This document shows, in pieces, positions 6,621 through 43,090 of a stretch of DNA of 64,000 nucleotides (its first letter is position 1; every line of letters begins with the position of its first letter). The notes under the pieces are model-generated. The model was given only the letters and a program-made list of their open reading frames with translations. It searched no databases and was not told where the DNA came from. This DNA is from Penicillus capitatus. Taxonomy: Eukaryota; Plantae; Chlorophyta. The DNA lies in assembly GCA_965649825.1 (NCBI GenBank), contig OZ287697.1, positions 893,635 through 957,634 on the forward strand, written 5' to 3'. The position numbers and the translations under genes are program-made.

Positions 6621-7399
6621 GACTGAACAGATCCTGTCCTATCATGTGACGCCCATCTGGGATATATTTCGTTAGACAATGACCCTGTTATTCTGCATTG
6701 CCCACTTCTTCTCTGTCAATTAAAGATGCCGTTAATCCAAGTCATCTCACAGTAAGTAGCTCCCGATCTCTCTAGCAAATCGTTGCCAATCATTGTGGAA
6801 CAACTTCATTTTTCCTGCGAAGGGTTTATGGACTCCAGCGTTTTAAGCGTCCTTTGCTGCGTCTGTGATGAAGCATGCGATTTGACTAAACGTGATCGAT
6901 GGCATGAAAAGCCGCAGACAAGAAGGTTTCCTGACAATAAGCAAAGAATCCGTCCATAGGTACCAGTCAAGTCAGCGAGATGATACGCTGGCGTACTCTG
7001 CGGATCGTGTACGGAATCGGCGGCCCGTCCGCCTACTTTTGAATGTATAAACTGTGTCCCATATCATTTTCTCTAAGGAGACAAGCAGCATTACATGTAC
7101 TACTGCTCGATATGTTCAATGAAAGGTGCCGATGTTATGTCAGCATTCGTTTGCAGTAGACTGCTTTCTGTCATAAACACCAGACACACTTTGTAAGAAT
7201 GAGCACTAGATCGTCATTGTTTTGTTGCCTCAGACGATTGCACTTGCATTTCCGCCTATCCACTCCGGAAGGAGATGCAGACGGACAGAGACTGGAAGAG
7301 ATGGAAACCACGTACGTATATTAAGCACCGGACGCACCGCTCGACTGCTATGAAGGCAGCACCCACATGCCTCGCACATCGACAGCGTCTCTATCGCTG

Positions 7400-8310
7400 C
7401 TTCCGTTCTCGACCGGATTTCCAGCGATCTTGGCAGCCTCGTTGATGCGAAGCAGGAAACACGACAATCTTTACTCCTCCTGGACTCAGGAAACAATGAG
7501 TTTCTTGTTGTCGACCTCTGAAGAAGAGTAAGCATACTTGGACTGTCTGGTTCTTGCCAGGAGTGCTGTAGTTTCTGCCATTGCCGAGTTTGCTTACGGA
7601 CTCGGAGGCGATTTCCAAGGCCTTCTCATCGCCGCCGTCCTCGTCGTCGCGCTCTCCGTGCACACAGACTGCAGACCCTTCAAACGCGATTTGGGTTATC
7701 TCAACATGTTAGACAGTCTATCTCACTTGGTGGGCTCTAGCACGTTTCTATGCGGCGTCATTCTTAGCGAACAACGATTCACTAGCGTTGTGCCGAAAGA
7801 AATTCCGGTTGCGGTCTCGCTGTCGGTAACATAGACTACCCGCTGCTCTGCCTTCCTTTCTAGGGAGTTTCGAGTTTGAAGCTATTTGAGTAGAGATGGA
7901 GATACTTGGAATTCGATGTTGGTGAGAGAGAGAGAGAGAGTTCCACAGAGTCGCGTTTGCATGTGCCGCGTATCAGTTCTCGCTTTTGTGCGCAAAACTC
8001 CGGGAAACGCTCACTTTCAACGGAACACGTGCTGCAACATCTGAACACTCTGTCGAACTCTGCCCTCTTCATCCGAGCCATTGAATCCTGCGAGGCTCTC
8101 ATCCAGGAAATAAGGCGAATAAACAACCCCACATTGCTGCTTCTGGTTGTTCATGTGCGAAATCTAGTGATCGGCTGTACTCGAATATTAGATGAGTGTG
8201 GGATTTGTATAGCGACTTCCAATTCTGCAGAGAATCCGCGCCTCTTACCGAGCGAGGTTCGATCGCGCCGTCTGACTGGATGCATGCGGTCATCCTCCCG
8301 GCAGATCTGA
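7400..8310 (+). pseudogene. C-terminal multi-transmembrane fragment of an algal receptor-like membrane protein, with a premature stop
   Basis: Frame reads SFLLSTSEEE*AYLDCLVLARSAVVSAIAEF...QGLLIAAVLVVALSVHTDCRPFKRDLGYLNMLDSLSHLVGSSTFLCG. This matches the GFLY..Y...YWE....RK / Q....L.LH....PF....LN.LE..S pattern of such proteins. The TAA at ~7528 lies in a GTAAGC, so an intron cannot be excluded. Confidence 0.45.
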
Positions 8311-8463
8311 TTTGGCAGCCATGCAAACGCGCTTGGCTGAAATGTTCGTGTTCATCCGTTCGTCTGCGCTGAACGGGGCGAACTGGATGACCAACGGTTG
8401 TGAGGAACAACGCGCCTTTCTTGCAGAACGGCGATATTCGCGCCGTCCCTCGCTTGGGCTCTC

Positions 8464-9000
8464 TCAGAGGTATTCAAACGACACAGACACAAGGGTCATC
8501 GCACCGAAGAGCTTTCTCGGCGAAATCGTCACTCGAAAGCGGAGATTTGATCCCAAAATCGCGAAACTCCGTCCTGCTCCCGCTGCCAAACCTAAAACGC
8601 CTAACGACCAGAGCGCGTGTCTGCTGTTCGCTTGCAAACAGATCGTCTGACGAAAGCATTCCGACAGACGCCACTGAAAGCTGTCCGTTTTGCGTTCGTG
8701 TGCACCTCGAAGCAATTATCTTTTCCGTCGAGTCTCGCCGCGTCTGCGCTACTAAAGATGCTGGTCACCAACCTCCGGCTGTTGTTTTGCTGGCAAGAGT
8801 GCCTCCACAGTCTGCAAAAGATCCCACGTTGCAGTTGACGCCGATGACGATGCTGCAGCGACAGAGAGATTTTCGCTTTCCATTCTTCTGACAGGAATCG
8901 AGTGCCGGGCGCATTGGGGCGACCGGCCCTGCAACGGGAGAACCGTTCGGCGAAGAAACTCTGGATACAGACGCAAACTTAGTGTGACGTACCTTGCGTG
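8464..9000 (-). other. ATG-less open stretch, possible exon(s) of an unidentified gene (weak PH-like motif)
   Basis: A long stop-free frame follows an AG|GTACGT...CAG intron-like segment and contains LDGKDNCFEVHTNAKRT. No complete gene model. Confidence 0.2.
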
Positions 9001-9270
9001 CAGAACCGTGACGAGTGAATGAATGGCCATACCGTGCTGCGAAGCGACGTGTTTTTCTGATGCACCAACACCATTCGCCGAGCCCTTTCGCAGAGGAGAC
9101 TGACGAATTGCACACCTCTGCCGCCGTCGCCCATCAAGAAAGAGACTCGACGAGTGATAACGCGATTCGAAGTGGAACGTCGTGAACCTCGCAAACGCTA
9201 ATTAACCCACAGATTTTAAATCTAAACAGGCAGTCGCCGTGTCCCTGCAAAAAACTGCGATGCAGGTTGC

Positions 9271-10470
9271 TTAAGAGATGGTGGTGATGAGTTCCACGAC
9301 CTTCCTGCCAGTCGAAATCAAATAACAACTGATCTTGCTGTCCGTGAGAATGACGCAGGATGGCTTATCGAAGAAGCGCGTGTCGATCGAAAATCGATTC
9401 CATCCGCTCCACTCCCATCCATCTAGAGTGTTTCCGTAGAGAAACATATCTCTACCGATGGCAAAGCAGTAGACTGTGGATGGTCCTGTCGAGACACATT
9501 CGGGAGCGGATTCGAATTTGCCTCCCAGATTGAACCATGCACTCCACTCTCCGTTGAATGTCTTGTGCATGATTTCGTTGCGCATGTCCAGAGCGAAGAG
9601 GTGCATTTGCTTCCCAGGCCATGATGTGACACTCGGTCTTTCCCTTGTCCACAGCTCGAGATCGAACCAAGGTCCCCAGACAGGTTTCGGAACTGCATTC
9701 AGAGTTCGTGCTTGAAGTTTATTGCCAGAGTTCACGGCAAAGTATGTGGTCGAGTTCTCGTCAAATGATCCATACGTCGGCCGTTTCCTAATGGAACCAG
9801 CAAGATCTTGAATTTTGAGTGAAAATGTTCCTTTCGTGGAGAGAATACGATACAAACGGGCGTTTATGTGCAAAACTACGCATTCGACCACTTCTGACGT
9901 TCTCACAACGCAGGATGGCGTTTCCTTGACAATGTCAGTTCCTTTCTGCCATTTACTCCACTCCCCATCCGCGTACTGTTTGACTATGATGTGGTTGGCT
10001 GAATCGGTACTCAGTATGTCGACGAAGTCTTCTTTTCTGCTGACACAGTCGATGTCGCCCGTAATCCAGCCGCCGAGGTTGTCCCAGTCGCTGTACACTC
10101 CGTTTTCCACGCTCATGTGCAGAACGTTCGACCAGGGTCCGCGTATGAAACAGTCCACGCGGCCCGGCTTGCTCGACACGCAGCACACGGAGCCTTCCGA
10201 CTCGATGCCGAGAACGCGCACAACGTCGCCGCTCGAATGCTTCTCGAAGAGAGCGATTTGAGGTGTCTCGGCGAACAAGGCAGGCGATTCATCTTCCTGC
10301 ACACCTTCATCCTCCAGCGGCACTTCATCTTCATTCAAGGGCGGGGTCTTGTGCGAAAAGAAGGGCTCCAGTTCGTGCATGCTATGCACTGCCTCGTTGG
10401 CGCATCCTGACCCTATGATGCTCAGCAGACAAACAAGGAACGCGCAGAGATTCGCACGACTCAGACGCAT
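9271..10470 (-). CDS. Secreted seven-bladed beta-propeller lectin-like protein, PLL/DUF346 type (copy 1, intronless, 399 aa)
   Basis: Signal peptide MRLSRANLCAFLVCLLSIIGSG. Acidic linker, then seven ~45-aa repeats of the form P.CVS....v.CF.......h......W..W..LGG (e.g. ESAPECVSTGPSTVYCFAIG, WSAWFNLGG). Confidence 0.85.
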   Translation of the reverse strand: MRLSRANLCAFLVCLLSIIGSGCANEAVHSMHELEPFFSHKTPPLNEDEVPLEDEGVQEDESPALFAETPQIALFEKHSSGDVVRVLGIESEGSVCCVSSKPGRVDCFIRGPWSNVLHMSVENGVYSDWDNLGGWITGDIDCVSRKEDFVDILSTDSANHIIVKQYADGEWSKWQKGTDIVKETPSCVVRTSEVVECVVLHINARLYRILSTKGTFSLKIQDLAGSIRKRPTYGSFDENSTTYFAVNSGNKLQARTLNAVPKPVWGPWFDLELWTRERPSVTSWPGKQMHLFALDMRNEIMHKTFNGEWSAWFNLGGKFESAPECVSTGPSTVYCFAIGRDMFLYGNTLDGWEWSGWNRFSIDTRFFDKPSCVILTDSKISCYLISTGRKVVELITTIS

Positions 10471-10829
10471 GGTGCAGGCGCAACGAGAAAAGCGAACGAC
10501 GGAGCGGCAATGAGAACGGCACCGCACCGAAACAACAGACCTAGGCTGGCTGCTAATGAATTGCAGACCCAATTGATTGTCTGTCTTTAATAATGATTCT
10601 TCGCAGCCGCGCGCTGATGCCTCTGCTTCCATGCAGCTTCCCCCGCGGACTCTCCTTTTCTCCGCGTCCTAGGCACAGGACAAAGCCATGTTTAGGACAT
10701 TGGGTCTCTTCTGCGGGGGAGGTGGACAGTCCAGCAGACTCTGCACTCCCAGAGTACCATCCAGCGTCATGTCATTGAATGGACAGATGGATGTCCACGC
10801 GCGACATTGTTCAGTCAGAAAGGCAGAGG

Positions 10830-13130
10830 TCACAAGGCGTGGTGTGCCGACGTATCGCTATGGATTCTTTCGACATCCGTGGAACCGATCAGGTACCAGC
10901 AGACCGTTCCATCCTTCCATGGTAGGTGATGGACCGAGAGCCTCCCGTCTTGGAGATGCTGGATGTGAATGCAACACTTCGCTACGTTCCGTTTTCTGTC
11001 GTCCATCGTACAACGTTCTGACTGGTTCTCCGCCAAGTCTGTGTTGTTCTTGATGAATGGCTGGATGATCGTTTGGCGCTGCACTTCCGTTGAAACAGTG
11101 ATTTTTGTCAGTCGAGATCTTCCATTCCGTTCTGCGCTTCTCGTCTTGTTCCAATGAGGCCACATGCAGACAGATTCCGACACAGTGTATGGGATGACAT
11201 GTTCTAACTTTCGATGACGTTGTTCAATGTATGACCTGTAGTTCTCTAGCACGGACCCTTTCGCTTGTTTCGTGTTGTCTTCGAGGTCGCAGTCAAATCT
11301 TTTGAGGATCCCTTTCATCCAGAACGCTCTCTAGGCGTTATGCGCTCCGTTGAATTCGTTTCGCGCAACGCCAGCCTCTTAGCAGGATCCATGTAGACGT
11401 GCACACTATCAAGAGTGAGTGTTTCTTTCAAACCCTTTGCAACTTCCGACAGCTTCACAGTCGAAGGCAGCAGTGGATACAGGCACCAGTGGCTACAGAA
11501 CAGGGAGCGATCGCATCCACGTCTATGATGTTGCGGAATCACTCATGTCACTGAGTGTTCTTTGACTGGTCGATGTCTCTGGCTTCGGCATACGAATCTC
11601 TGTTCTCTCCGGTTGGGATAGAGGAGGTCACTCATTTGCCTGCCAAAACCAAAACAACACAATCATTAGGGAAATGGACTCTGTTAGAAGAGATGGACAG
11701 GTGTATGAGCAAAGAGATAATTCTAACCGGCAGGCGCGGCACACGAAGTCCAACAGATCGTCTAATCCGATACGAGGTCGTGTGAATACGCTTGTTTATC
11801 TGATGCTCGCAACAGAGACAACGCGTCGCAGGGCCATGGAGTGCCGTCTTCTAAAGCTCCTTCACTGCGTCGGGTATCCCCAAAGAAGCACGTCATCGTG
11901 CAGACCGAAGTCTGAACTTGCAGACGCCGACTCTTCCGTTCGCATCTTCGGAGTGAAACAGACCTTCGAGAGTCGCGGATGTCAAAAGATCGGGCAGGAG
12001 AACGAATTGCCTCAGCAGTGCCACGCGTGAAGTACGAGCGCTTCAGCCCAAGGTCCCACCCACGAGGCGATGGGTCTGCTCGAACGCATTCGATTGTCTC
12101 TCATGTTTGTTTTCGTTTCCCTGCCGCATCTGCGGGATACGAGCAGAAAAGAGTGGTGACGCGTTCGATCCTTGTCGAGATTTCGGTCCACTCGAGAGCA
12201 GCCTGCCATCAACGAACGTTTCGGCAGTTCGCGTCGACAAGGACGTTTTCTTCGGCGAGGTTCGGAACAGGAAAAGACTGAACGACGTCAGCAGCACTCT
12301 TGGACGAAGGTTTGTATCGGTCTCTCTGTGGATGCGCTATGACATTCAGGCTTTCGTCCGCACGATGACGGAAGGCGAATCGGTGAAATATGGCATACCG
12401 TTCACTCGCTGAAAAAAAGCTGCACGCAGTCTTCTCGGCTGGCGGACTTGACAGTCGTTTATGCAGCATCTTATCGAGCCTAGGTCGCATCGATTTCGTT
12501 TTGAGCTTAGCAGATTGTTGAGCGCAGTACATTTAGATCCATCGAGAGAGAGAGAGGAGACGGACAATTCAGAGGCGTGTCAGAACCGGCACAATCAAGG
12601 GCGACAGTCGCGAGGTCATGTGTCCGTGACGACGCACCGTTGTTTTCATCGATTGCTTTGCTCTTCGAAAGACGGAAGAGCCGTTCCTCGAATCGGCGAC
12701 GTAGCCAGAGCAGTTGTGCGATCTTGGCTGCTTCGCGCATTTGCACGTTACGCACCACCCCACCCTCCTCCGTGTCTCTAGAGAAGATGCCGATCAGGTA
12801 ACCTCATTAATGTGCAAGACATGATTCATGCATATCGTAGGTATGCGTCGACAAGAGAATGTTAACACTCAAGTGCCGGTCGGGATTCGATAGGGTCGTC
12901 GACTTTGAAAGAGAGCTGTGTTCGTTCGCGCGGAAAGAGGAGCACGAACGAATACCTCGCCCCTCAGAGGTGTTCTGTGCGGTTAGTGTGAAAGAGTGGG
13001 ACGACAGGGATGCGTCTTTGATGTTGATCGAAATGTGTGACCGTAGAAGTTCGTAGGATATGCAAATGAAGAGCAACGGCCTTCTTTGCTTTCTCCTTCC
13101 AATAAGGCCATCGCCGCATTAGAATGCAGA
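10830..13130 (-). pseudogene. Decayed Roco (Roc-COR)-like gene
   Basis: Frameshifted, stop-containing segments occur in COR-domain order: AAFFQRVNGMPYFTD (cf. AL.FLH.lG.ilyF), ESLNVIAHPQR (cf. VIL.PQW), FVLLPDLL, RLPVRIISLLIHL, NDCVVLVLAGK. No intact frame. Confidence 0.4.
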
Positions 13131-13889
13131 CAACGAAGAGAGCACACGATTTCTCTTTCGGGAAACAGATGTACTAGCCGGTGGTCCTTGAAAGCCCATC
13201 GAGCTAGCAGTTTGTGTCACATTTCGCCGTCACCGTCAGCGAACGGCACGCACAAAGAGTGAATCATCGTTCGCTTTTCGTAGCCACCTATTCGTCGTGC
13301 TGTGGCAGGAATCGCGCTTCATACGCCGCGCCATAGAAAGAATTGCGGTTTCTACTTCATAAAGCGAAGGAAGCATGGATTGAAGTCGTTTTGCCGACTG
13401 CAACCGGACCCTAAACTATGTTATGCTAAGGGGCTGCGGACAGCAAGAGCGAGAGTGTGTCTAGAGAGCTTGAAGGTTTCGTCAATAGATGACCGCCGAC
13501 GAAACCATCCTTCCTGTTCACTCATATTCTTCGTCGCCGTAGCGGCCTTAGACACCTGAAACGTGACAGGTATTTTTGGAGATAGACGACAGCAACACGC
13601 GAACGCTTTGCCCGTGGCAGCAGCGGGATGTGTGCGTGCGTTCGCGCTGAATGTTGGATGCGAAGATTCCTTCACGGAAGAACCTACGATCGATCAAGAG
13701 GATCAATCGGAGGCGTTCATACGTACATCATGTTCGGGGCACGATCGACCAGAAACTATTCTCAGACAGCCGGACAGACAGCCAGCCGGCATACAAATAG
13801 TCTATCGCCAGTTCTTTTTTGGTATTTCTCCGTCCTCTCTTTCAGACTTTGCCGTCAGAGATCGTTCATTTCTCGCTCCTAAGAGCGTC

Positions 13890-15089
13890 ATGTTTTGTTG
13901 CCGTATGGTTTTGTTCGTCGCCGTCATTACTTTGTTGACGGCAGGTGCACCAACCTTTACCCACGTCTCTGCGGCAAAGAGTTCGGCCTATACGTTCTCA
14001 GCAAAGATCGCTCAAGAAGCATCCTTTAAGAATCGCGACTCGAAGGCGGTGGCACTCGAAGAGATACTAGCCGCTTCCAATTCCAATGCTCCGAAGAAAA
14101 TCACAGGGGAGGATATAAACCTAGGTGGGAAAGCGCAAACTCGTCCCTGTTGCGTTTCGTCCGGACTGCAACGCGTCGACTGCTTCGTTAAAGGCCCGAC
14201 GGCGGAGGTGCAGTGGATCTACGTCCATCACGGCGACTACTCAGACTGGGTGACATTGGAAGGGACGATACATGGAGACATTGAATGTGTGAGCCGCAAC
14301 GATGGCGTCATCGACGTCTTGGCTCTCGACGAAACTGGTATGCTCATGGACAAGACCTACATACATCACACGTGGAGCGAATGGAAAATTGTGGGCGGAC
14401 CCTACATGGAAGTGCCTTCGTGTGCCGCACGAATGGCTTGGATCATCGACTGCATGGGCAGAATGGCGAATGACGCTTCGTTGCAACACATTGGACATGG
14501 TTTTGATGGTTCCTGGAGGTATCATGACGATTTTCCAGGAGAATGGGCTTCGAGCCCTGTGGTATGCTCACGAAGATCCCTTGTCGACTTCGATTGCTTT
14601 GGCAGTGGAGAAAGCATGCTTCTCCATGGGAAATTCTGGATATCGGGTGAATGGTCCCCCTGGACGAGTCTCAGTGCCCGAGGACATAAACGGCCCTCTA
14701 TTGCGACTTGGGGGACGTCGCTGAGAATGCATCTGTTTGCCATGGCTGTCGAGACGACAGGCATTGTGCATATTCCCATCAATGTTAAAGCAGAAGAACC
14801 TTGGGAAGATCTGGGAGGCGTCTTCGATTCCGTGCCTGAGTGTGTGGCGTATGGACACGACCTCGTTTACTGCTTTGCAGTAGGAGAGGAATCTTATCTG
14901 TATTTCAACTCTCTCGACCTTGACGGATGGTCGGGATGGAGCCGTTCCACCTCTTTTCAATTCCTCGAAACGCCATCCTGTGTCCTGGAGAGAAAGGAGT
15001 TCGTCTTTGAGCAGTACTACATCGTTTGCACTGGAAGAGCTGTCGGCCAAGATGTCATTCAGATTACCTACGATATTTCTGTCGAATAA
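13890..15089 (+). CDS. Secreted seven-bladed beta-propeller lectin-like protein, PLL/DUF346 type (copy 2, intronless)
   Basis: Start at ATG 13890 or 13905. Signal peptide MVLFVAVITLLTAGA. Repeats paralogous to copies 1 and 3 (RPCCVSSGLQRVDCFVKGP, WEDLGGVFDSVPECV, FLETPSCV). Confidence 0.85.
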   Translation: MFCCRMVLFVAVITLLTAGAPTFTHVSAAKSSAYTFSAKIAQEASFKNRDSKAVALEEILAASNSNAPKKITGEDINLGGKAQTRPCCVSSGLQRVDCFVKGPTAEVQWIYVHHGDYSDWVTLEGTIHGDIECVSRNDGVIDVLALDETGMLMDKTYIHHTWSEWKIVGGPYMEVPSCAARMAWIIDCMGRMANDASLQHIGHGFDGSWRYHDDFPGEWASSPVVCSRRSLVDFDCFGSGESMLLHGKFWISGEWSPWTSLSARGHKRPSIATWGTSLRMHLFAMAVETTGIVHIPINVKAEEPWEDLGGVFDSVPECVAYGHDLVYCFAVGEESYLYFNSLDLDGWSGWSRSTSFQFLETPSCVLERKEFVFEQYYIVCTGRAVGQDVIQITYDISVE

Positions 15090-15145
15090 ATCTCTACCTT
15101 TCGATCTTTGTTCTTCGGAACTGAACATGTTGTGTGGATGGGGGA

Positions 15146-15170
15146 ATGGGATGGGATGGGATGGGATGGG
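15146..15170 (+). repeat. (ATGGG)5 microsatellite
   Basis: Five perfect ATGGG units, read directly, downstream of the lectin copy 2 stop codon. Confidence 0.95.
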
Positions 15171-15214
15171 TTTGAGAATCGTTTTTTGTGTCCTTAATCG
15201 CAGTTGGATGCCTT

Positions 15215-15658
15215 CTATAAACCGGATGCAATGCACACGAACACCATTTTCCCCCACATTGCCTGCCTTGGTCTGTTTGGCAGTATGATTGTGAACAGAA
15301 CCTTTTTTGCTGCAAGCTGTGTGAGATGGATTCGGTGTTTTTGGGTGGTTTGCATGATTTCCCGGTAAACAGATGTCAGCAGTTTCTTTTGGCGTGGAAT
15401 CTCTTCGACGTCGCGCGATTTTCGCGACAAACGGAACGAAAAGGTACTCAGAGATGGTGGAGGGAACGTACCGAGAAGTTTGATTTCGACTTCCTCATGC
15501 CCATTCAAACCGTCGCCCGAAAACGCATGCAGCATCTGCCGCGTCCTTCCGTTTCGGCGCCAAACGAAACCGCTTCGTCGCTGCTTGTCACTCCGACACT
15601 CCACACAGCCAAGGATCGCTCTCTGGCGGCACGCAGGGCGATTCAGAGGTGCGTGCAT
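15215..15658 (-). CDS. Small hypothetical protein
   Basis: ATG at 15658 (MHAPLNRPAC...), an open frame to 15215, and a consensus G|GTACGT donor with an in-frame intron. No recognisable domain. A competing + strand ORF (15326-15688) exists. Confidence 0.3.
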   Translation of the reverse strand: MHAPLNRPACRQRAILGCVECRSDKQRRSGFVWRRNGRTRQMLHAFSGDGLNGHEEVEIKLLGTFPPPSLSTFSFRLSRKSRDVEEIPRQKKLLTSVYREIMQTTQKHRIHLTQLAAKKVLFTIILPNRPRQAMWGKMVFVCIASGL

Positions 15659-15795
15659 CTCGATGCGAAAAGACACAAGCTACAGTAATTGCCGCCATTC
15701 GGGCATATTCTTCGTCAGAGTCAACAAGAGATCATGTTCGTTTACGAAAAAGCATAATAACTGTTCGTCGAAGCTCAAGAGCTCCTTCTTCCTCA

Positions 15796-18700
15796 TCAAA
15801 CACGTGGACGTTTCGTGGCCGGCTCCATTCCGTCACACAGAGAGACATTCTGCTGACTCTCTGCACCCGAAGAACCCTCTGTGGCTTCATGACTCGACTG
15901 CGGACGTGCACTCGTTTCAGCGCTCGCAATCTGACATCACTCAATGATCTCGCGATCACCCACACCGATGGCATACCTGTGGGAGGGATGGAGTGCCAGA
16001 CGAGAGACTAGGAACTTGTCGGCCTCTCTTGAGGAGACAGGAGAGATGCGCCGTATCCGAAATGAGCCACGGTGCAATGCGTTCACAGGACAGAGGCTCT
16101 TCATCTTTCTCCGCGAAGCTGCTGCGCGGCAGGTGCCTAAACAGAACGCGTTTGGTGTTTCTCTTTGGCGGAGAGTGTCACGCACCTGTCCTCTCCACTC
16201 TTCTCAGAGGCCTCTGGACTACAGAACTTCAGAAGGTGTGCTTGCATTTTGGTCACAAAGATGGAGTTGTAGAAATCAATGATATCACTCATGTCTTCCA
16301 CCTAAGTGTTCGATATGCGCTTGTTCGCGCTATCCATTGCATCGCTCGGAGGTTCCGTTACCTGGAATCCTGGGTTCGTTTGACGTAAGATCACGTTTCT
16401 GTAGATTTCTGGCTGATGAAGTTGCTTGTAGCGATGGGTGATTTCTTTGAACGTAATGCCTAAGTTATGTACTTTGCAGACGCCATAGAGTGCACAGAGT
16501 GTGATCTGATCCAAATGGCGATTGTAGAACAGATGCGTCTGCTCATAGAGTGCACATTTGAGGGTCCTGTACACCTGGCTCGGCAGATACCTCGCTGCAG
16601 GACCGTCGAGAGAGGAAGAGAACACACCTGAAGCATGATAGCGTTGTTGCTGACAGGTTGAAAATTGAGATGCAGCTTGAAGTCCATCAGACGGTGGGCA
16701 GCAAGCCTCAGCGTCTTTCTGAAGAAATCCTCCAGAACGATTCTAGATCGATTCGGCTTGGCATGGACAGCTTCGATCGTTCCCAGGCCTTCTGGCAGAT
16801 GCGACTCCCTCGAGGCGGATAGGGACGACGACTGTGTGCTTTCAGAAGTGCTGCCTGCGGACAGAGCTGCAGGACAGTGCCACAGGATGGAGATCTCTTG
16901 CCTGTCCTGGCCGAGGAGGCCACGACTTTGAAAGCGGAACCGGGCGATCTCTGATCCAGCGAGAGGCCGGGGATCGACAGAGCAGAAGACTTGAAGAAAG
17001 GCGCCTGTGATACTGTCTCGCCCGTTTTGGGCATCTCTGTCTCGGAGAGCGTTTCCTGAATGAGCGTGTAGATCGATGAGCCAGGCAACCAGGACAACGA
17101 TTCGATGATGCGTTCTTCGATATGTCGCAGATGTCTTTTCATTCTGGGATGCATGTCCGTCATGGCGTTCAGGAAGACGTCGATGATCTTGCAGAATTCG
17201 AAGGGTCTCAGTTTGAGGATGTTCAGAAGGGTCGGAAACGCCAAGTGCTCCTGGAGATGCGAGAACGGTGCGTGAGTGAGAACGCCGATGATGTGACAGG
17301 AGACGACCTACCAGCTTTAGCGAGACGATCACTATCTCCAAGGCACAGGTGATAAGAGAGAGCACAAAGTCTTGAGACAATAGGATAGGTGAGAAGCCCT
17401 TTCCGTGCTGCACATGCGATTCCATCTCCAGCAGCGATTCCATGGACCGATAGAAGATCTGGATGCCCTGTCAGAGACAACGCAGCAATGGGTGGGTATC
17501 TGCAAAGAGATGCCAAAGAGGGATGTTACCAGTGATGCCTCGTGGGAAATCTCTTGAGGATTGGTGCCTTTGCTTGGGAGGATTCTCTGGACAATGCCAA
17601 ACAGCTTCGACTGAATGGCTGCTGTCATTTCAGATCCGCAGGTATCGAGATAAGACTTCAGCTTCTCCGATGGCTACAGGACACAGAGTGTCGTTCTCTC
17701 TTGTCTGGCGAGTGACCCAAGTGACAGACATTGATGGGACAGTGCTGTGCGAAGCTGGCGAGCCACGTGGCCAGTGAAGTACGGGATGAGGAAGAAGAGG
17801 TCTTGTCGAGGGGGAATGTGGAAGGTGTGGGTGGAGATGGGGCGGGTGAGGGCAGTGCGGCAGGAGGGACTGGCGCATCCAGCTTCTGCATGACACGCTC
17901 GACAAGAAACAGACGTTCATCACATTCGCCTATCGTCGCTAAATATTCCTAAATCGCCACACCCCACCATCATCTCATGCATTGCGTGCGATCTGCCAAG
18001 ATGGTCACCGAATATCGCGAGTCCAGCACTTCTAAGCAATGGTCTAGTAGATGTTTTTCGGGATCCAGTACATTATTCGCACTTCCTTGAAATCTGGTTT
18101 CTCCCTAGAGAGATGATCATTTGAGTGAGTGAAGGATGTGACTGCAGAAAGAATCCTGCCTGAGTGGATATCCCTTGATTCTGCACATCGATGCGGCTGT
18201 TGAGTAAATCCAAAATCAATCCTTCGACAGATGTCATCAGATCTTCCAATCTCTTCCATTCCTCTTTCGGAATCTTGTTCAACACTGCACGTCACATCAA
18301 ATCACATCACATCACATTCGATCCATCCATGCAGAGGTATGCTCACAAGCGAGTTTATGGAGGGAAATGATGCCATTCCCTTGATCGCTCGAGTCTCGTT
18401 CAAACAAGGTTCGCAGATCCGGATGCCAAAACGAATTCGGCGTATTCACCAGGAGAAAGTTGCAAATACAAAGTAATAGATGAAAACAACTGAACACATG
18501 ACACAGATGAATAGATGATGATCAAGAGTGGAATGGACACAGCAGGGCTGAAGGGGGGAAGAGAGGACAGACGGGTGATCTCACCTGGGCAGGTCAGGAA
18601 ACTCTGGCAGCAGTTTCGACTTCTCCAGAATAAACATGAGCCAACCGAATCGAAAGACCTTATTATTTATCAAGTCGTTAATATCCACGTGAAACAAAAG

Positions 18701-19226
18701 TGTAAAAAGATCCTTTGCATGCACAAAAGAGTGAGAAATGTGTGAGAATGCAGGTGGGAGACTTTGTATTTCTTGGACAGTAGAGTGGAGTACACCAACA
18801 TTGTCCGCCACGCCTTCATGCGCATTGCCACCATTTCCACGTCGATCTCTCTGCCACAGAGTGACGCGAGCTTCGGGGCAATGAGGTCCATCGCATATGG
18901 CAACTGACGATAGAAATCAAAGAGACTATGGCATGACAAGCGTGCGTCGCTGGCAGTGGATGCCAGGTGGAATGGACGTCGTACTCGAGACGCAGATGCT
19001 TGACGATGGTCGAAACCGGCAAGGCAGCGTTGGGCGGTGCGTTTGCGGCATGGCGTTTGGCCAGACAACGTGCGAGATAAATCGCCGCGGCTTGGAGCGT
19101 TGGCAGCGTGAGTTTGGATTGAATGTCAGTCGGGGCGTCGTTCTTTGCATCACAGAGCTCGCGAAAGAGCATCTGTGCGAATTCAGCGCATTCGCTCTCC
19201 AACACCAGCTCGCCGTCGAGATTCAT
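15796..19226 (-). CDS. RBR: Retinoblastoma-related protein (RBR/MAT3), multi-exon
   Basis: N-domain: VKHLRLDLFDFYRQLP, LLSKKYKDLF, FRFGWLMFI. Pocket A: FPTLLNILKLRPFEFCKIIDVF...RHLRHIEERIIESLSW. Pocket B: LFYNRHLDQITLCALYGVCKV...TFKEI, DIIDFYNSIF. C-terminal NLS-like PATKRPRV*. Exons joined by ~46-60 nt GT-AG introns. Confidence 0.95.
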
Positions 19227-19248
19227 CGCGACCAGGAAATGGATGGGC

Positions 19249-22200
19249 TCAATAGTGCGCTAAATGTTCGACTATTTCTGTCAGTCGATGACGGGACAGG
19301 ACGGAATCGAACATCGGACTTCCGTATGTTTTCGTTTCGTTGCGGAAACTAAAAATAGTGTGAACCTTCCACATCGCTTCCGGCCGGCTCTTCAGCTGCT
19401 CCAATAGAAGGCTGCGGTCTTTGGAGGTGTAGCTTCCGTGATGACGCTGATAGCACGATTCGATATCGGGTAAGGAAAGACTGCCCCGACGATCGGCGGA
19501 GAGAGAGGCCGTTGGATCGTTCACGGTTTGCTTGTACCACATAACGAGTTGCCCCCAAATAAAATGCGCTCCATACTTTTTGCAAATCACGGGATCCCTG
19601 TCACATCATGAAAAGACGTTTGAGTGAGAAATGCGTGAGCGATGTGACAGATCGTTAGGCTTGCATTTTGTCTTTGTCGTTGTGCATTCCGGTTGGTTCG
19701 TTTGTGGAAGGTAGACAAGCGCCAGAGACGCTGCTGAGATGAAGCCTCAATGGCTCCGAAGTGAAACCTGTATACCAAGGCAGATAGACGCTCTGCTTGA
19801 TTAGCGCCTGTCACGATGAGACGTACCTTTGTAGTGGTATCCAGGTTGAAAGAAAATCTGAGTGTTGGCGTAGAGGTAGAGAACATCGGCTGCCGCTTTG
19901 TGCAGACCACCTAGATACTGATGTGACAACGCCAGATGATCATTTGACGTTGATGTGACACCTGAAGCGCTGTCGAGCACTCTGAGCAGTTTTTCGATCG
20001 AGAGAAGGTGTTGCCGAGCAGTGCTGAGGTCTTGGACGTCTTGGCAGAGAAGATGACACATTTTGGCGATTTCTGGATGTCGTCCATCGAGTTTCTGACC
20101 CAGTCTCTCCATTTCTGACGAACAGAGATCGTTCTTCTTCTTGACTTCTGCTGGCAATGTCGCTTTGAGGAAAGATTTAAAAAAACGCCGGGCGATGGAG
20201 GTCTCTCCAGACCACAGGTGCTGAAGCGTCTGTTCTTCGCTCAGAGGGATAAGCGGCGGTCCCTTCGGCTGACATTTCTGCTGCAAACACATCCGTACTT
20301 TATCAAGCGTGATTGCGATATTTTGCAGACGACTTTCTTTGACGCCTGGCAGACGACACAGGTGTGAGAAAGGGGTAAGTGATATAGGAAAACCATGATG
20401 GTACCTTTGGCTTGTTCATGAACATGAACAGTTGTCGCCGACGGTTGGGAATCTTGGGCATTGGATTGCAGGGCATCAGGTAGCAGACGGTACTCCTCCT
20501 CGATGAACTCCAAAATCAGAGCCGCCCATTTCTCCAACCAAGGAGGCACGCGATCATCATCTCTGCCGAGACATGCTTCCCTCAATCCATGACGCTTCAC
20601 AAATGATAATCCTCTGTCACAGAACAAAGGACAGAATCGGTGCTCACATCCAATCGACGTCGGTCTTCTTCTGTCAGCGGCTCCGTTGCCGTTCGGAGGA
20701 GAATGGCGTTTCTGTGGAGAAAATTATGACGACAGGACATGATCTGCATATAAGCACTGCTCCCAGCGTAATGCAGAAAGGAACCGCGGCAGAGGGGAGA
20801 TCCACAGAGGCAGATGGCCGATCGGAATTCTTTCTCGCTTTCTGTCACGGACGCATAGTCGAATGTCAGTTCCTGCCCCTTCAGTACCTCCCTTGTCGTG
20901 TACATGGCAATGGTTAACCGACCATCCACGGACAGCACGGTCACTTGGCAGTTGGGATCGCAGCTGTGGCTCATGCGACTGGCGAAGGTGCCCTTGGCAG
21001 CAGCATCCACATAGATCACCTCAAAACCGTCAGGATCCGTCCTGGGCCGTTCCAAAACAATGTTATAGAAGTCGGGGACGTCGTTTGGCGATTGCCGTTT
21101 CAAAATGTCTTGAATCTCGAACCATCTCCATGGCGCATGCAAGACGCCCAAGTACTCTTCAACAAGAGTGAAGGGTGGAATGCCATCGGTGCGTTGACAG
21201 ACGACGCCTGTTCCTTTGGGATGGATTCGGAAATAGTCATCGCCCACCCACTTGAGCCTCTTCTGTACGGCCGTGGCCATCTGAGCGCCGTGAGATGACG
21301 CATCAGAAGAGGAATGGCAGATGAGGTCGAGTGCCGAGGCAAGATTCCAACCCTTCTCTCCTTGTTCGTTGATTGTGGGGCTCAGGACTGTTTGGAACCA
21401 GCAATGCGCATCTGAGCTCTCCACTCCAGGGATAGATGCATCGACGACGGCGTCGTAGACATTCTGCCGAGAGTAGCAGTCCATTCCCCATGTATCCACC
21501 TCCCTGACGTCCACCTCAAGTTTCAAGACCTGCAGAGATTACACTTGTATTGTCACGGAGGTCGGAGCCAAAACGCACATCCCTTTGGCGGACGGATTCG
21601 ACGAGGGATGTCTCTTTCTGTCGGAGATCGGATGAGGACAAGGAGGGATTATTTTCGAAAAAATCGACGCAGCAGCCGTCCGGAATCGAACTGCGCAACT
21701 TCTTGAGCAAAATCTCACGGTTTTCCTCACACTCATAGCTCTCGATGTGGATGTACTCTCTACGCCAATGTCACTGTCCCATCAACCAGATGCAATTTTT
21801 CAATACCCACAGACCTCTTGTCAAATGGCTCTTTTCGCCACGTTCGATGAAAATAGGGCAGTTGATTGGCGCGGATGGAACGGGGAAGTGAAGATTCTTC
21901 AGAAGTAACAGTGTCATCGGCAGTGGTCGTTGTTTTCTGTGCCTTCTTAGGCGTATCATAGATTTCCTGAATGGCCTCCGTCAGTTGATCCAGAAACCCG
22001 TGCAAGGAGGATGGAGACAGGGCGGATGCTGACCCACCCTCACACATCTTCCAGTATGCAGCAGACACGTCCTGCACTACTTTTTCGCTGGAGAGGGCCG
22101 AGGCCTCTTCTCGCCATTGCTCGCACAGATCTGCATCACCACCTAAGTCCAGAAGGACGCGGACGTGATACCTTCCACGTAGCTTCCTTCCTCTATCAAT

Positions 22201-22900
22201 GCTTCTGCCACGACGTGACCTCTCAACTCAGTCGCGGCATTCCGTCCCTACAGCATCACACTTTTGGACAGGTGACGGAGTGAGAGGACATGGTGGACGC
22301 TGTCGTTGTCTACAGCGCGGGGTGCATTCGATGAGAAGATACTGTCTAGTAGTTTAACAATCTCTGGCTTTTTGTCAGAAACCTCCTCGGACGCTTCTCT
22401 TTTGGTTCCTCTCACACTTTGTTTCTCACTCATTTTACCATCGTCACCCTTTGGGTCCTCCATCGAGAAACGCGTCGCATCTTCCGACTCTTCACAAGAA
22501 TCGCAGAGCAATTGAGCTTTAGGAAAAAATCCCAATCCGACATCCGTTTCTTGTTTCCCCGTCTTCGAGCACAACTCCGGTGGATCCCATTGATGACACA
22601 CGGTCAGGAGCTTCTCTGCTGAGGTCACTGTAGTCACACATCGATTCTTGGCCTCTTTCCGTATCCGCATCAGTCTCTTGATCAACCGTGCCTGTCCTTC
22701 GTCGTCTTCGATGCTCCCCACTTTGATTTCTGCCAGCAACCGCCTGAAACGTCATCCCCGTCAACCGAGGGTCAAACAGAGGGGGAGCCGCACTTCAGCT
22801 GATCATGAAACCGCGGAATTTTGCTTTCGAGCCAACGGCATTCTTCCGATGTGCGAAGACGCTCCAATCGATGCAGAAAGCCGTCGATCGAGGACTTCAT
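19249..22900 (-). CDS. ATXR3: ATXR3/SDG2-type histone H3K4 methyltransferase, multi-exon
   Basis: SET region VEEYLGVLHAPWRWFEIQD...DFYNIVLERP...FASRMSHSCDPNC...ELTFDYASVTESEKEFRSAICLCGSPLCRGSFL. SDG2-specific C-terminus GQLVMWYKQT...RGSLSLPD...YGSPMFDSVL. Start inferred at ATG 22900 (or in-frame 22924), joined via a 50-nt intron. Confidence 0.92.
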
Positions 22901-22929
22901 CGCGTTGCCGTGTTTAATGCTCATCTTCT

Positions 22930-25754
22930 ATGGAGTTTCGTTTTGCCGACCTTCTCGGTGCGCCGTACCGTGGCGGCTCGATCGTCTTCGACGGCGCTAC
23001 GATCCTTTCACCCGTCGGCAATCGACTTCAGGCGATCCGTCAGACAGAAAGTCGAACGCTCGCTTTTGAGTGTCTACAGCCAATCCGCGTCGTATGTCTG
23101 AGTCCATGTGGCCGTTTGCTTTTGCTTTTTGATGCTGAGGGACGGCTTGTTGTCGTCAACCGCAAACGCGAGAGTGTGCTGCACCATATGAAATTCAAAG
23201 CGCCTGTGAGTTGTGCGAAGTTTCGCCCCGATGGCGAGTTCATCGCTGTGGGATGCGAAACTCGATTGCAGATCTGGAAACGACCGGCAATGGAGAAGCG
23301 ATTGGCACCGATGAGTTTGTATCGGAGTTATCAGGCGGTATCGGAGACGATCACATGTATGGATTGGACGCCAGATGGCATCGGCGTGGCGATCGGAGCG
23401 CGCGATATGACAACGAGGATCTTTACGATCGATCCGGTGCACGATTATCAACCGAGTGTTCTTGGAGGTCATCGAGGATCGATCGTCGGCGTATTTTTTA
23501 CATCTGAAAAAACGAAACGTCAAAGCGAGATCGCGACTGATGCGAAAGATCGACCGATCGACTTCATCACGATCGGATCGATGGGGAAGATTTCGGAATG
23601 GAGTTACGATCGTGACGACGACGTCGATTGCACGGAAACACTAAAAGAGATATCGCACGGCTGCTTTTCCGAACCAACTGACGAGGCACACCACGAAGAG
23701 TCGAGTCGCACATGTGACGACCCTGCTTACACAAGTGTTCCAAACGTCACATCAACCGATGAGATGCAGAGAACCGTTTTGGGCGACTGGATGTTCCATA
23801 AAGGCCGTTGGATCCGTTGTTTATATCACTCTTTTGATCTGGCGGGACAGACACGTGTGACCGATGTAGACTATCACAAAGAAACGGGATTGATGGTGGT
23901 GGGATTCTCGAACGGCGTTTTCGAATTAGTGCAGTTTCCTGGGTTTCATCGCCAACAGGTCCTGAGCGTTTCACAGGAGCGCCTCACCACCGTGCGTTTC
24001 TCCCCTCGCGGCGACTGGATTGCCGTTGGCTGTGCGAAACTGGGTCAGTTGTTAGTATGGGACTGGCGATCCGAGACACAAGTACTTAAACAACAAGGTC
24101 ATACTTTCGATGTCTCCACTGTCTGTTTCTCACCCGACGGTCGTCTCTTGGCAACGGGGGCAGAAGACACTAAAGTCAAAATCTTCTCCACAGCGACAGG
24201 ATTGTGCACAGCGACGTTCAAAGAACATCTTATGCCAGTGACTGCGATTCGATTCTTCCCCAATAACAATGCCATCGCCAGTGCCAGTTTGGATGGGACG
24301 GTTCGAGCCTTCGATCTCATTCGTCAACGGCATTTTCGTACCTTTGCTGCCCCGGATCCGGTTCAGTTTAGCTGTTTGGCACTTGATCCCAAGGGCGAAG
24401 TGCTGGCAGCCGGTTCACAAGACAGTTTCCAGATTTTTGTTTGGTCGTGTAAAACGGCCAAGCTGCTCGATATCCTGGCAGCCCACGAAGGGCCTGTCTC
24501 ATCGCTGGCATTCCATCCGATCCAACCGATCTTGGGGTCCAGTTCGTGGGATCATACTGTGAAGATATGGGATGTGTTTGGCACGTCCAAAGGCAGCATC
24601 GATACGTTCGATCATACGCACGAAACGACGACGTTTGTTTTCCGACCCGACGGAAAACAGCTCGCTGCTGCCACTTTAGACGGAACGCTGCATTTCTGGC
24701 ATCCCCTCGAAGGCGAGGAACAAGGTGTACACAATGGATCTCTACCTCTCATTTCTGCGTTTTCACAGTGATTGGTTGATTAGGGGTTATAGAGGGACGC
24801 AGGGACATTGCACGGGGTCGATGGGTCACAGATCGCCGCATTGCCACCCCTTTCTCAACAGAAGCCTTTTTCACTTCGCTTGTGTACAGCGCCGACGGTT
24901 CTCTGCTCTTTGCAGCTGGCAAGAGTAAATACATCTGCCTCTACGATGTGGACAACCGCGTTCTGCTGCAAAAGATCCAGACGTCAAGGAACAAGTCCCT
25001 CGATGGCGTCCTCGATCTGCTCAACTCGCGAAACCTCACCGAAGCAGGCGCCATCGAGTGGATCGAGGATGAAAACAGTGAAGAGGAAGAACAGGAGCTC
25101 CAACCGTCGATGATGGGACTGGAGGAGGCAGCAGAGCTGCCAGGATCCACTCAACGGAAGAAACCTATCCTCCAGACACGATGTCTTGCCCTCTGTCCAA
25201 CCGGACAGCGATTCGCAGCTGCCACCACTGAAGGCGTCCTGCTCTACCGTCTCGACGGTGGCACTCTTTTCGATCCTGTCGATCTGGACGAGGACATGAC
25301 GCCACAAGCAGCAACGGCTGCACTGCAAAACGGCCATTACCGTAACGCCCTGCTCATAGCTCTACGACTGAGAGAGACGCCGCTCGTGCAGCAGTGTCTC
25401 CTAAGCACACCGGTGGAGCAGATTTTGATAGTGCTGCGTTCGGTGCCAAGTGGTTATGCCACTCAGATACTGGACGTTCTATCCATCTCCTTACGTTCGT
25501 CACCCGATGTGGAGCTCCTACTCAACTGGGCGAAGCATTGCTGCACAGTGTACGGAGCGAAGCTCATGGAAATGCCATCGACTGCAACAACCAGTCTAAA
25601 GAAGCTGCATCAAGTGCTCCACGGATTTCAATCGGAGATCGGCACACTGGTCCAAAGCAATCTCTATTTGATGCAATACATTCAGACTGCCCATCAAAAA
25701 CGTATCCATCCCGAACACATGTCCATCGATAGCGACGTCGAATCGAGTCCTTAA
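22930..25754 (+). CDS. PWP2: Periodic tryptophan protein 2 (PWP2/UTP1), WD40 ribosome biogenesis factor, 2 exons
   Basis: N-terminus MEFRFADLLGAPYRGG. WD40 repeats: QLLVWDWRSETQVLKQQGH, DGRLLATGAEDTKVK. Utp12-like C-terminal region. A 59-nt intron (24725-24783) joins the two ORF-track pieces. Confidence 0.97.
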
Positions 25755-25770
25755 TGCCCCTTCTCTTGTC

Positions 25771-26095
25771 TCACTGTGGCATGGAATTGACGAATGCTCG
25801 CCTTGAACTCGTCAGCCTTGGATCGATTCGTCGCCCTAGTCTACTAAGTTTATCTTCCAAGGAGCGATGTGATGAAGGGGACCTCTTCCGGCGGCGTTCG
25901 CTTTTGAGACATCGATCGAGCTCGTGTTTCGCTTCGTTGCAGACACCCCAGAATTTGGCAACAGGATGACGCTTATGGCAGCTTAGCAGTCGAACAATTT
26001 CCTTAGCGCACAGTCCTCCACCTCCGACGGCTGCTGTCGACGCGTCTTACCTTACGGCAATAAGGATACGTCTGAAACGCGAGCGGTGGATGCAT
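25771..26095 (-). CDS. CMC2: COX assembly mitochondrial protein 2 (twin CX9C); not in the ORF track
   Basis: MHPPLAFQTYPYCRK | 49-nt intron 26050-26002 | EIVRLLSCHKRHPVAKFWGVCNEAKHELDRCLKSERRRKR. Two exact C-x9-C motifs plus the MHPPL start and HP..KFWG.C signature of CMC2. Confidence 0.9.

Positions 26096-40613: not shown

Positions 40614-43090
<2,477 letters not shown>

Follow-up and report, generated by a model that had tools for sequence, protein, structure and literature searches.

Background

Green algae are, to our knowledge, the one eukaryotic group in which polycistronic nuclear mRNAs are common, and all the characterised cases that we know of combine a short first open reading frame (ORF 1) with leaky scanning. 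Such loci have been described in Chlamydomonas, Chromochloris, Dunaliella and Auxenochlorella (Gallaher et al. 2021, PMC7896298; 2024 preprint, PMC11291117). Their median inter-ORF distances range from 40 to 260 nt, with some overlapping pairs in Auxenochlorella, and leaky scanning is made possible by a short ORF 1 (medians of 291-600 nt) in which AUGs are depleted and Kozak contexts are weak (PMC7896298, PMC11291117); loci with both mono- and polycistronic transcripts have been described as well (PMC7896298). In this study we analyzed a locus of the green alga Penicillus capitatus in which the gene of an SDG2/ATXR3-type histone H3 lysine 4 (H3K4) methyltransferase ends 22 nt before the start codon of the next gene, that of the retinoblastoma-related protein RBR. 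The two genes lie on the minus strand of a stretch of 64,000 nt (assembly GCA_965649825.1, contig OZ287697.1, positions 893,635 to 957,634), which is called the window hereafter and to which all coordinates refer unless a contig is named; the genome has about 51% GC and short introns.

The SDG2-RBR pair is like the polycistronic loci of green algae in its same-strand, non-overlapping ORFs, its very short gap, the lack of a common frame, the colinearity that has been kept and its green-algal host. It differs from them in several respects. The SDG2 ORF, which stands in the place of ORF 1, is about 3 kb long and holds at least 49 AUGs, so that the architecture of leaky scanning is not present, and the two products are large known regulators instead of small 'pioneer' proteins. 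Moreover, loci of this type are defined by full-length reads with both ORFs on one mature capped, polyadenylated mRNA, whereas SDG2 and RBR are joined in a short-read RNA-derived contig of a relative, which contains about 21 nt of RBR.

Three other arrangements are close enough to be compared. In RNA viruses, termination-reinitiation takes place after long ORFs, as in the VP1/VP2 pair of caliciviruses with its termination upstream ribosome-binding site (TURBS) and in the M1/BM2 pair of influenza B; reinitiation after long ORFs requires special cis elements. A long upstream ORF, a stop codon within tens of nucleotides of the AUG and a constrained distance are common to these viral pairs and to SDG2-RBR. 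The viral stop and start, however, overlap or nearly overlap and are accompanied by an 18S-complementary UGGGA motif and by structure, whereas the cellular, nuclear SDG2-RBR pair has a gap of 22-25 nt, no UGGGA within 150 nt and no conserved structure. Short upstream ORFs (uORFs) mediate reinitiation of the GCN4/ATF4 type, and a hypothetical likeness to it would arise if the transcription start site of RBR lay in the last SDG2 exon, with the terminal 21 or 41 codons of SDG2 as the uORF; the differences are that initiation factors could hardly be regained efficiently over as little as 22 nt and that this 'uORF' would be the tail of a neighbour's protein. In overlapping tandem units, finally, the upstream gene contains the promoter of the downstream gene and extends its own 3'-untranslated region (3'-UTR) over the downstream start, and the two transcripts become merged in short-read assemblies; the SDG2-RBR locus departs from this picture in that its surroundings are not generally compact. 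Our analysis identifies SDG2-RBR as an unusual form of algal gene abutment that has been conserved.

Results

A conserved junction between SDG2 and RBR

On the minus strand the junction reads GCG CAC TAT TGA, then gcccatccatttcctggtcgcg, and then ATG AAT CTC. The TGA stop codon of SDG2 (19249..19251) was read directly, the inter-ORF spacer gcccatccatttcctggtcgcg occupies 22 nt (19227..19248), and the start codon of RBR lies at 19224..19226. The initial annotation had placed the SDG2 stop 22 nt before the RBR start, which is borne out by the minus-strand sequence. It had also taken the TGA to close the true C-terminus of SDG2 and had excluded an earlier unspliced start of RBR. Both statements hold: the SDG2_C profile is matched up to position 407 of 420 and relatives stop at the same residue, and a TAG in frame with the RBR ATG lies 12 codons upstream of it (19260..19262), with no ATG in between. 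Likewise, the argument that the spacer is too small for a conventional 3'-UTR and a promoter is supported by its length of only 22 nt.

The junction was compared in six assemblies, which represent four lineages: the window and L016; L001 and L015; L002; and L005. L016 (ENA ERZ25074695, ctg340516_41x, a metagenome contig of 1.46 Mb) is 100% identical to the window over 14900-25800 (10.9 kb), the 22-nt spacer included. L001 and L015, which derive from one shared ENA sample and have about 88% nucleotide identity to the window, also have 22 nt, with one C>T change. More diverged are L005, a Logan genomic contig with introns whose SET exon is 69% identical in amino acids, and L002, an RNA-derived JGI contig whose SDG2 is 66% identical in amino acids; their spacers measure 25 and 23 nt. 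The TGA is found at the equivalent position in L001, L015, L002 and L005, and the RBR start is kept as ATGAAT(C/T)TCGAC in all relatives, the RBR proteins of the clade all starting with MNLDG or MNFDW. The counterpart of the upstream TAG in L005 is a TAA 13 codons before the RBR ATG; in-frame stops at 12-13 codons were found in the window, L001 and L005.

The recurrence of this junction in six assemblies from four lineages rules out an assembly error, one of the reservations raised at the outset, and the comparison of synteny and spacing proposed there gave adjacency with 22-25 nt in four lineages and its absence at six other loci. These are green-algal SDG2 loci or mRNAs (L003, L004, L006, L008, L012 and L013); in Caulerpa, SDG2 and RBR are far apart as judged from gene numbering. 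Between the lineages, the fraction of identical residues that still use the same codon is down to about 0.4, and the spacer length has been held at 22-25 nt while the synonymous sites are saturated. Because same-codon use has fallen so far, the arrangement is old although clade-specific, and on these comparisons the SDG2-RBR abutment is to be regarded as an old, conserved feature of one green-algal clade. One metagenome scan for further relatives returned only L002, which was already known.

The only conserved part of the spacer sequence is a TTTC(C)TG(G/T) motif beside the RBR ATG. In the window this is ATTTCCTGG (19232..19240, minus strand), the sole spacer element common to the relatives, with the counterparts GTTTCTGG in L002 and ATTTCTGT in L005; a loosened pattern of the motif occurs 5 times in the window where 2.3 matches are expected, which is no significant enrichment. 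No AUG occurs within the spacer, and the context of the RBR AUG varies among the sequences, with G, T or T at -3. The offsets from stop to ATG are 25, 26 and 28 nt, none of which is divisible by 3, and there is no common frame; the junction combines a short inter-ORF distance (22-25 nt) with ORFs out of a shared frame.

RNA across the junction

In L002 (JGI contig Ga0099817_1124356) the SDG2 exons directly follow one another, the introns of the window and of L005 being absent. The SDG2 coding sequence is followed by the TGA, by 23 nt and by ATGAATTTCGACTGGGAATTT, which encodes MNFDWEF (MNLDGEL in the window), that is, the first seven or so RBR codons in about 21 nt; a chimeric join comes next, and the last 257 nt of the contig (2514-2770) are antisense bacterial large-subunit (LSU, 23S) rRNA (Rfam RF02541, 239 bits). 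As it is free of introns and fused to antisense rRNA, L002 is a chimeric contig from an RNA library. It shows that, in this relative, RNA with spliced SDG2 extends beyond the stop by at least about 44 nt and so reaches RBR. RNA from SDG2 thus passes through stop and spacer, which means that SDG2 and RBR form transcription units that either overlap or are physically joined. A functional SDG2-RBR bicistron is unproven: a short-read assembler would also merge an SDG2 3'-UTR with an overlapping RBR 5' leader, and L002 does not demonstrate a full bicistronic molecule.

Gene model of SDG2

The SDG2/ATXR3-like gene (19249..22924, minus strand) was recognized by its SET and SDG2_C Pfam matches and probably starts at the putative first-exon ATG at 22924. 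A GT-AG intron of 50 nt separates exon 1 (22924-22794) from the next ORF, and exon and ORF alike evolve as coding sequence; the SDG2 substitutions against L001 fall mostly at third codon positions. The introns are many and measure 50-67 nt, and the C-terminal model is spliced with GT-AG introns and one GC-AG intron. A tblastn search with P0002, the protein of the relative's mRNA (L002), covers 21996-19252. The exon with the SET domain and the beginning of SDG2_C (20648..21526, minus strand; PF00856, E=8e-13, and PF19633) has 95% amino-acid identity to L001 and 69-73% to L005 and L002, and a second SET score for SDG2 is E=5e-12 (PF00856). The frame of the penultimate exon (GFTSEPLRLHLSSVSG..., 19665..19767, minus strand) was set by homology to P0002, and its spliced translation was verified. 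It is followed by the last intron (19598..19664, minus strand), a GC-AG intron of 67 nt with the donor GCAAGC, which is the sole phase-compatible junction; the GC donor is kept in L001, and the equivalent junction of L005 has a GT donor.

The last exon, which includes the TGA (19249..19597, minus strand), covers positions 294-407 of the 420 in the SDG2_C profile. After splicing, the C-terminus forms one PF19633 (SDG2_C) match, from profile position 2 to 407 of 420 (E=1.6e-70), that directly follows SET, and the protein ends 3 residues beyond it. The relatives end at the same residue (HLAHY*, HLSQY*, HLRDC*), and in every clade member 20 aa follow YGSPM, fewer than in any of the other homologues examined (range 25-73 aa). 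Homologues were found in Trebouxia, Picochlorum, Ostreococcus, Caulerpa and Ostreobium, and the identity to the named relatives Picochlorum, Enallax, Trebouxia, Caulerpa and Ostreobium is 44-62%; from its membership of this family, the SDG2 product would be expected to trimethylate H3K4. The partial L002 mRNA encodes 817 aa of SDG2, and the window model encodes about 1000 aa.

An Rfam search of the conserved segment 19735-19598 gave no match at the gathering threshold or at E<=5. The idea of an RNA family or an intronic snoRNA was dropped, the segment being mostly coding exon.

Gene model of RBR

RBR exon 1 (18985..19226, minus strand) is 242 nt long, that is, 80 codons plus 2 nt. Its substitutions against L001 are of the coding type (3/0/11 by codon position), and tblastn gave 46% amino-acid identity to L005. 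Intron 1 (18926..18984, minus strand), a GT-AG intron of 59 nt, shows an indel and a burst of divergence against L001, and its removal restores the conserved DLFDFYRQLP frame. Exons 2-4 (18925-18763, 18712-18585 and 18489-18347; in all 18347..18925, minus strand), with introns 2 and 3 of 50 and 95 nt, contribute the RB N-domain, and their spliced translation was verified. The earlier proposal that the first 150 or so residues from the ATG match the RBR N-domain stands in part: it is correct after splicing, and not for the unspliced frame, in which exon 1 supplies 80 codons only. Spliced exons 1-3 match DUF3452 at residues 71-176 with a marginal score (26.8 bits against a cutoff of 26.3, E=4.5e-6), and there is a weak alignment to the human RB N-domain (4ELJ, 2QDJ), which lies about as far from the N-terminus.

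Exons 3-4 are nearly identical to the RBR of Caulerpa lentillifera (P0099), which has a near-identical FRFGWLMFILEKS motif. The pocket (16218..17467, minus strand) consists of RB_A at about 17467-16891 (PF01858, E=8e-18) and RB_B at about 16798-16218 (PF01857, E=3e-20), and is also found by tblastn of P0099. The C-terminal exons (15796..16217, minus strand) come from the ORF listing, with a P0099 match at 16105-15971, and the candidate stop is ...KRPRV* at 15798-15796. The spliced SDG2 and RBR models contain no internal stops. A search with the RBR N-terminus matched only the ORF of L001, and a word-filtered search with the RBR protein gave few matches, of which Caulerpa was the closest and the rest were distant animal RBL2/RB1 pocket proteins.

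Three further observations concern the RBR coding region. The Caulerpa lentillifera model P0099 (EukProt g3931.t1) begins with MFRFGWLMFILEKS inside the N-domain, the N-terminal exons being absent from the annotation. RBR exon 4 (SCFHLLLCICNFLLVNTPNSFW…, 18347-18489) differs from L001 at 1 of 141 nt, and its third positions have diverged by 2.1%, those of the remaining RBR exons by about 19% (Fisher P=0.001). A segment of about 207 nt with an RBR exon (…NKIPKEEWKRLEDLMTSVEGLILDLLNS…, 18107-18313) is present in the window, in L005 and in L015, and is missing from L001 (at about 10900), which shares its ENA sample with L015; this has the appearance either of an exon deletion in one haplotype or strain or of a difference between assemblies.

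Nucleotide constraint and surroundings of the junction

When the window is compared with L001, third codon positions have diverged by 4.3% in the last SDG2 exon, as against 19.7% in the other SDG2 exons (binomial P=2e-6). The identity to L001 is 94% in the intron before this exon and 95% in the spacer, as compared with 44-90% in the other introns; these values are like that of the PWP2-SDG2 promoter region (98%) and unlike that downstream of RBR (61%). Such conservation would fit regulatory DNA, namely a promoter or leader of RBR, that overlaps the 3' end of SDG2.

The sequence 3' of RBR is poorly conserved for about 700 nt or more, the conservation with L001 collapsing below about 15660, and the proteasome and PWP2 genes stand tail to tail about 480 nt apart. 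The locus is not generally compact, and the 22-nt gap is therefore a local exception, and a conserved one. At the other end of SDG2, its putative ATG (22924-22922, minus strand) and the ATG of a PWP2/Utp12-like WD40 gene (22930-22932, plus strand) are divergent and only 5 nt apart, and about 130 nt around these starts are 98% identical to L001 (context 22794-23000). With starts 5 nt apart, promoters or leaders that overlap the coding sequence of a neighbour seem to be tolerated at this locus.

Other chromatin-related genes occur in the vicinity. The window contains a JmjN-containing (KDM5-like) ORF at 41730-42998 on the minus strand and a gene with preSET_CXC and SET domains (E(z)-like) at 58882-60731 on the plus strand; in L005, a JmjN/JmjC KDM5 gene (132-2030 of the contig) lies 8-10 kb upstream of SDG2.

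Possible routes to the RBR start codon

Leaky scanning from the 5' end of SDG2 to RBR is ruled out, since at least 49 AUGs precede the RBR ATG, the number counted in the partial mRNA of L002. The initial annotation had judged it implausible on the ground that the upstream ORF is about 1000 aa long with many ATGs; that description was fair, L002 having 817 aa with 49 ATGs and the ORF of the window extending from about 22924 to 19249, and the judgement is confirmed. A fusion of SDG2 and RBR by readthrough or frameshift is excluded by the offsets of 25, 26 and 28 nt together with the in-frame upstream stops. TURBS motif 1 (UGGGA) was found in none of the four sequences within 150 nt upstream of the stop, and a TURBS of the calicivirus type was rejected on this ground.

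Folding of the junction gave z-scores of +0.37 in the window, +0.34 in L001, -1.0 in L002 and -2.6 in L005, with no conserved structure, and Rfam gave no match. L005 has a perfect inverted repeat of 11 bp (12196-12253 of the contig; ACAGAAATTGT ... ACAATTTCTGT), whose predicted hairpin (z=-2.56) spans the SDG2 stop and reaches as far as the RBR ATG. A shared hairpin between ACAGAAAT (SDG2 codons T-E-I) and the ATTTCTGT-like motif was considered and discarded, as it is unformed or unstable in the window and L001 and differs in L002.

The poly(A) signal UGUAA is uninformative for the 3' end of SDG2, and none follows RBR: the minus strand from 23400 to 14900 holds one TGTAA, and none occurs from 21543 down to 7095. 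This TGTAA-free stretch of the minus strand (7095-21543, 14.4 kb) spans the 3' part of SDG2, RBR and beyond, and the pentamer is not globally depleted.

Discussion

The data are best explained by two complete, separately translated genes that stand head to tail on the minus strand, an SDG2/ATXR3-type methyltransferase and then RBR. As to their expression, we tentatively prefer, at somewhat less than an even chance, overlapping tandem units with the RBR promoter inside the 3' end of SDG2, a kind of 'incompletely polycistronic' locus. Standard translation biology and the conservation between the window and L001 are the reasons for this preference. RBR would be translated mostly from its own shorter capped mRNA, which would start inside the 3' end of SDG2, its promoter being embedded in the last SDG2 intron or exon; alternatively, the RBR mRNA would have a very short leader beginning within the spacer or close to it. 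For the SDG2 mRNA, the poly(A) site would lie somewhere within RBR. Met codons in the SDG2 frame at -148 and -88 give uORFs of 41 and 21 codons which end 22 nt before the RBR AUG. Should the leader of the RBR transcript exceed 88 nt, it would include the last 21 SDG2 codons (MFDSV...LAHY*) as a short uORF, and ordinary reinitiation could handle a uORF of 21 codons that ends 22 nt before the AUG. Several points weigh against overlapping units. The synonymous excess of the last exon is confined to the closest pair and is gone against L005 and L002, where the same-codon fraction is 0.36-0.37 in the last SDG2 exon and 0.41-0.50 in the other exons, so a deep synonymous constraint in this exon, seen against L001 only, was rejected; comparable islands of conservation also exist elsewhere, for example RBR exon 4. 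The internal RBR promoter is purely inferred, and an embedded promoter leaves unexplained why the spacer stays at 22-25 nt under sequence turnover in three deeply diverged lineages. In addition, L002 could equally derive from a true bicistronic mRNA. Taken together, an RBR promoter inside SDG2 with an SDG2 3'-UTR over RBR fits the data at least as well as a bicistron does.

An obligate bicistron would consist of one capped and polyadenylated SDG2-RBR mRNA, with about 1000 codons of SDG2, on which the 40S subunit is kept after the SDG2 TGA and restarts at the AUG 22-25 nt further on, so that the output of RBR is tied to the translation of SDG2. We regard this as rather unlikely, though it is the rival with the most substance. 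Its main argument is the spacer itself, which measures 22, 22, 23 and 25 nt in spite of sequence turnover and saturated flanking synonymous sites; a constant length with a variable sequence is what a constraint on the distance between stop and restart would produce. The continuity of RNA over the junction in L002, the trimming of the SDG2 tail after YGSPM to 20 aa across the clade and the spacer free of AUGs also speak for it, as do hundreds of validated polycistronic mRNAs of green algae, in some of which the inter-ORF region is very short or the ORFs overlap (PMC7896298, PMC11291117). Against it, ORF 1 would be about ten times as long as the known algal medians, and the known algal cases use leaky scanning, with published tests speaking against reinitiation (PMC11291117). 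The special cis elements of long-ORF reinitiation are not in evidence either, as UGGGA is missing within 150 nt in the four sequences, the junction structure is neither conserved nor unusually stable in the window (z=+0.37), Rfam gives no match, and the context of the RBR AUG is unconserved. The strict form of the proposal, in which RBR is made solely from the bicistronic mRNA by reinitiation across a length-constrained spacer of 22-25 nt with no known viral-type element, we consider doubtful to a higher degree. A shared promoter whose common precursor is resolved into two mRNAs, by alternative splicing of a 5' exon to an acceptor immediately ahead of the RBR AUG or by cleavage and processing in the spacer, is improbable. 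Such a precursor would be compatible with L002, and AGs are present at or in the spacer (in the window, L001 and L002 as TTGAG before a C, at the stop; in L005 as TTTTTTAG before a C), but these putative acceptors are not positionally conserved, that of the window is poor (GAG), and the sole RNA-derived sequence is unspliced at the junction. We know of no spliced-leader trans-splicing or operon processing in green algae, which also counts against this possibility. Finally, there is a very slight chance that the gene models are wrong, through another RBR start or SDG2 end, a fusion protein or a pseudogene, which would render the gap meaningless. The window species has no full-length cDNA, the DUF3452 score is marginal, and the Caulerpa RBR model in EukProt is without its N-terminus, so that an annotated reference start is lacking; on the other side stand the ATG with MNLDG or MNFDW in every clade sequence and the stops upstream of it, the 3/0/11 substitutions in the frame of this ATG, the end of SDG2 at the same residue across the clade with the Pfam profile matched to 407 of 420, the offsets that exclude a readthrough or common frameshift fusion, and the spliced models free of internal stops.

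Conclusions

At the SDG2-RBR locus, the genes of two large central regulators are paired across a conserved gap of 22-25 nt. The locus may be a natural test case of whether a cellular mRNA can support efficient reinitiation downstream of a long ORF; alternatively, it may be a clear case of a promoter and leader embedded in the coding exon of a neighbour and kept over long evolutionary time. If the obligate bicistron were true, it would be a new cellular form of translational coupling, in which the dose of the G1/S repressor is tied to the translation of an H3K4 methyltransferase. A functional coupling between H3K4 methylation and RBR is speculation, and the adjacency is clade-specific and absent from six other green-algal SDG2 loci. 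Either outcome bears on how gene finders treat abutting genes, as the Caulerpa RBR model without its N-terminus illustrates, on the design of bicistronic cassettes for algal engineering, and on how the dosage of RBR is set in these algae.

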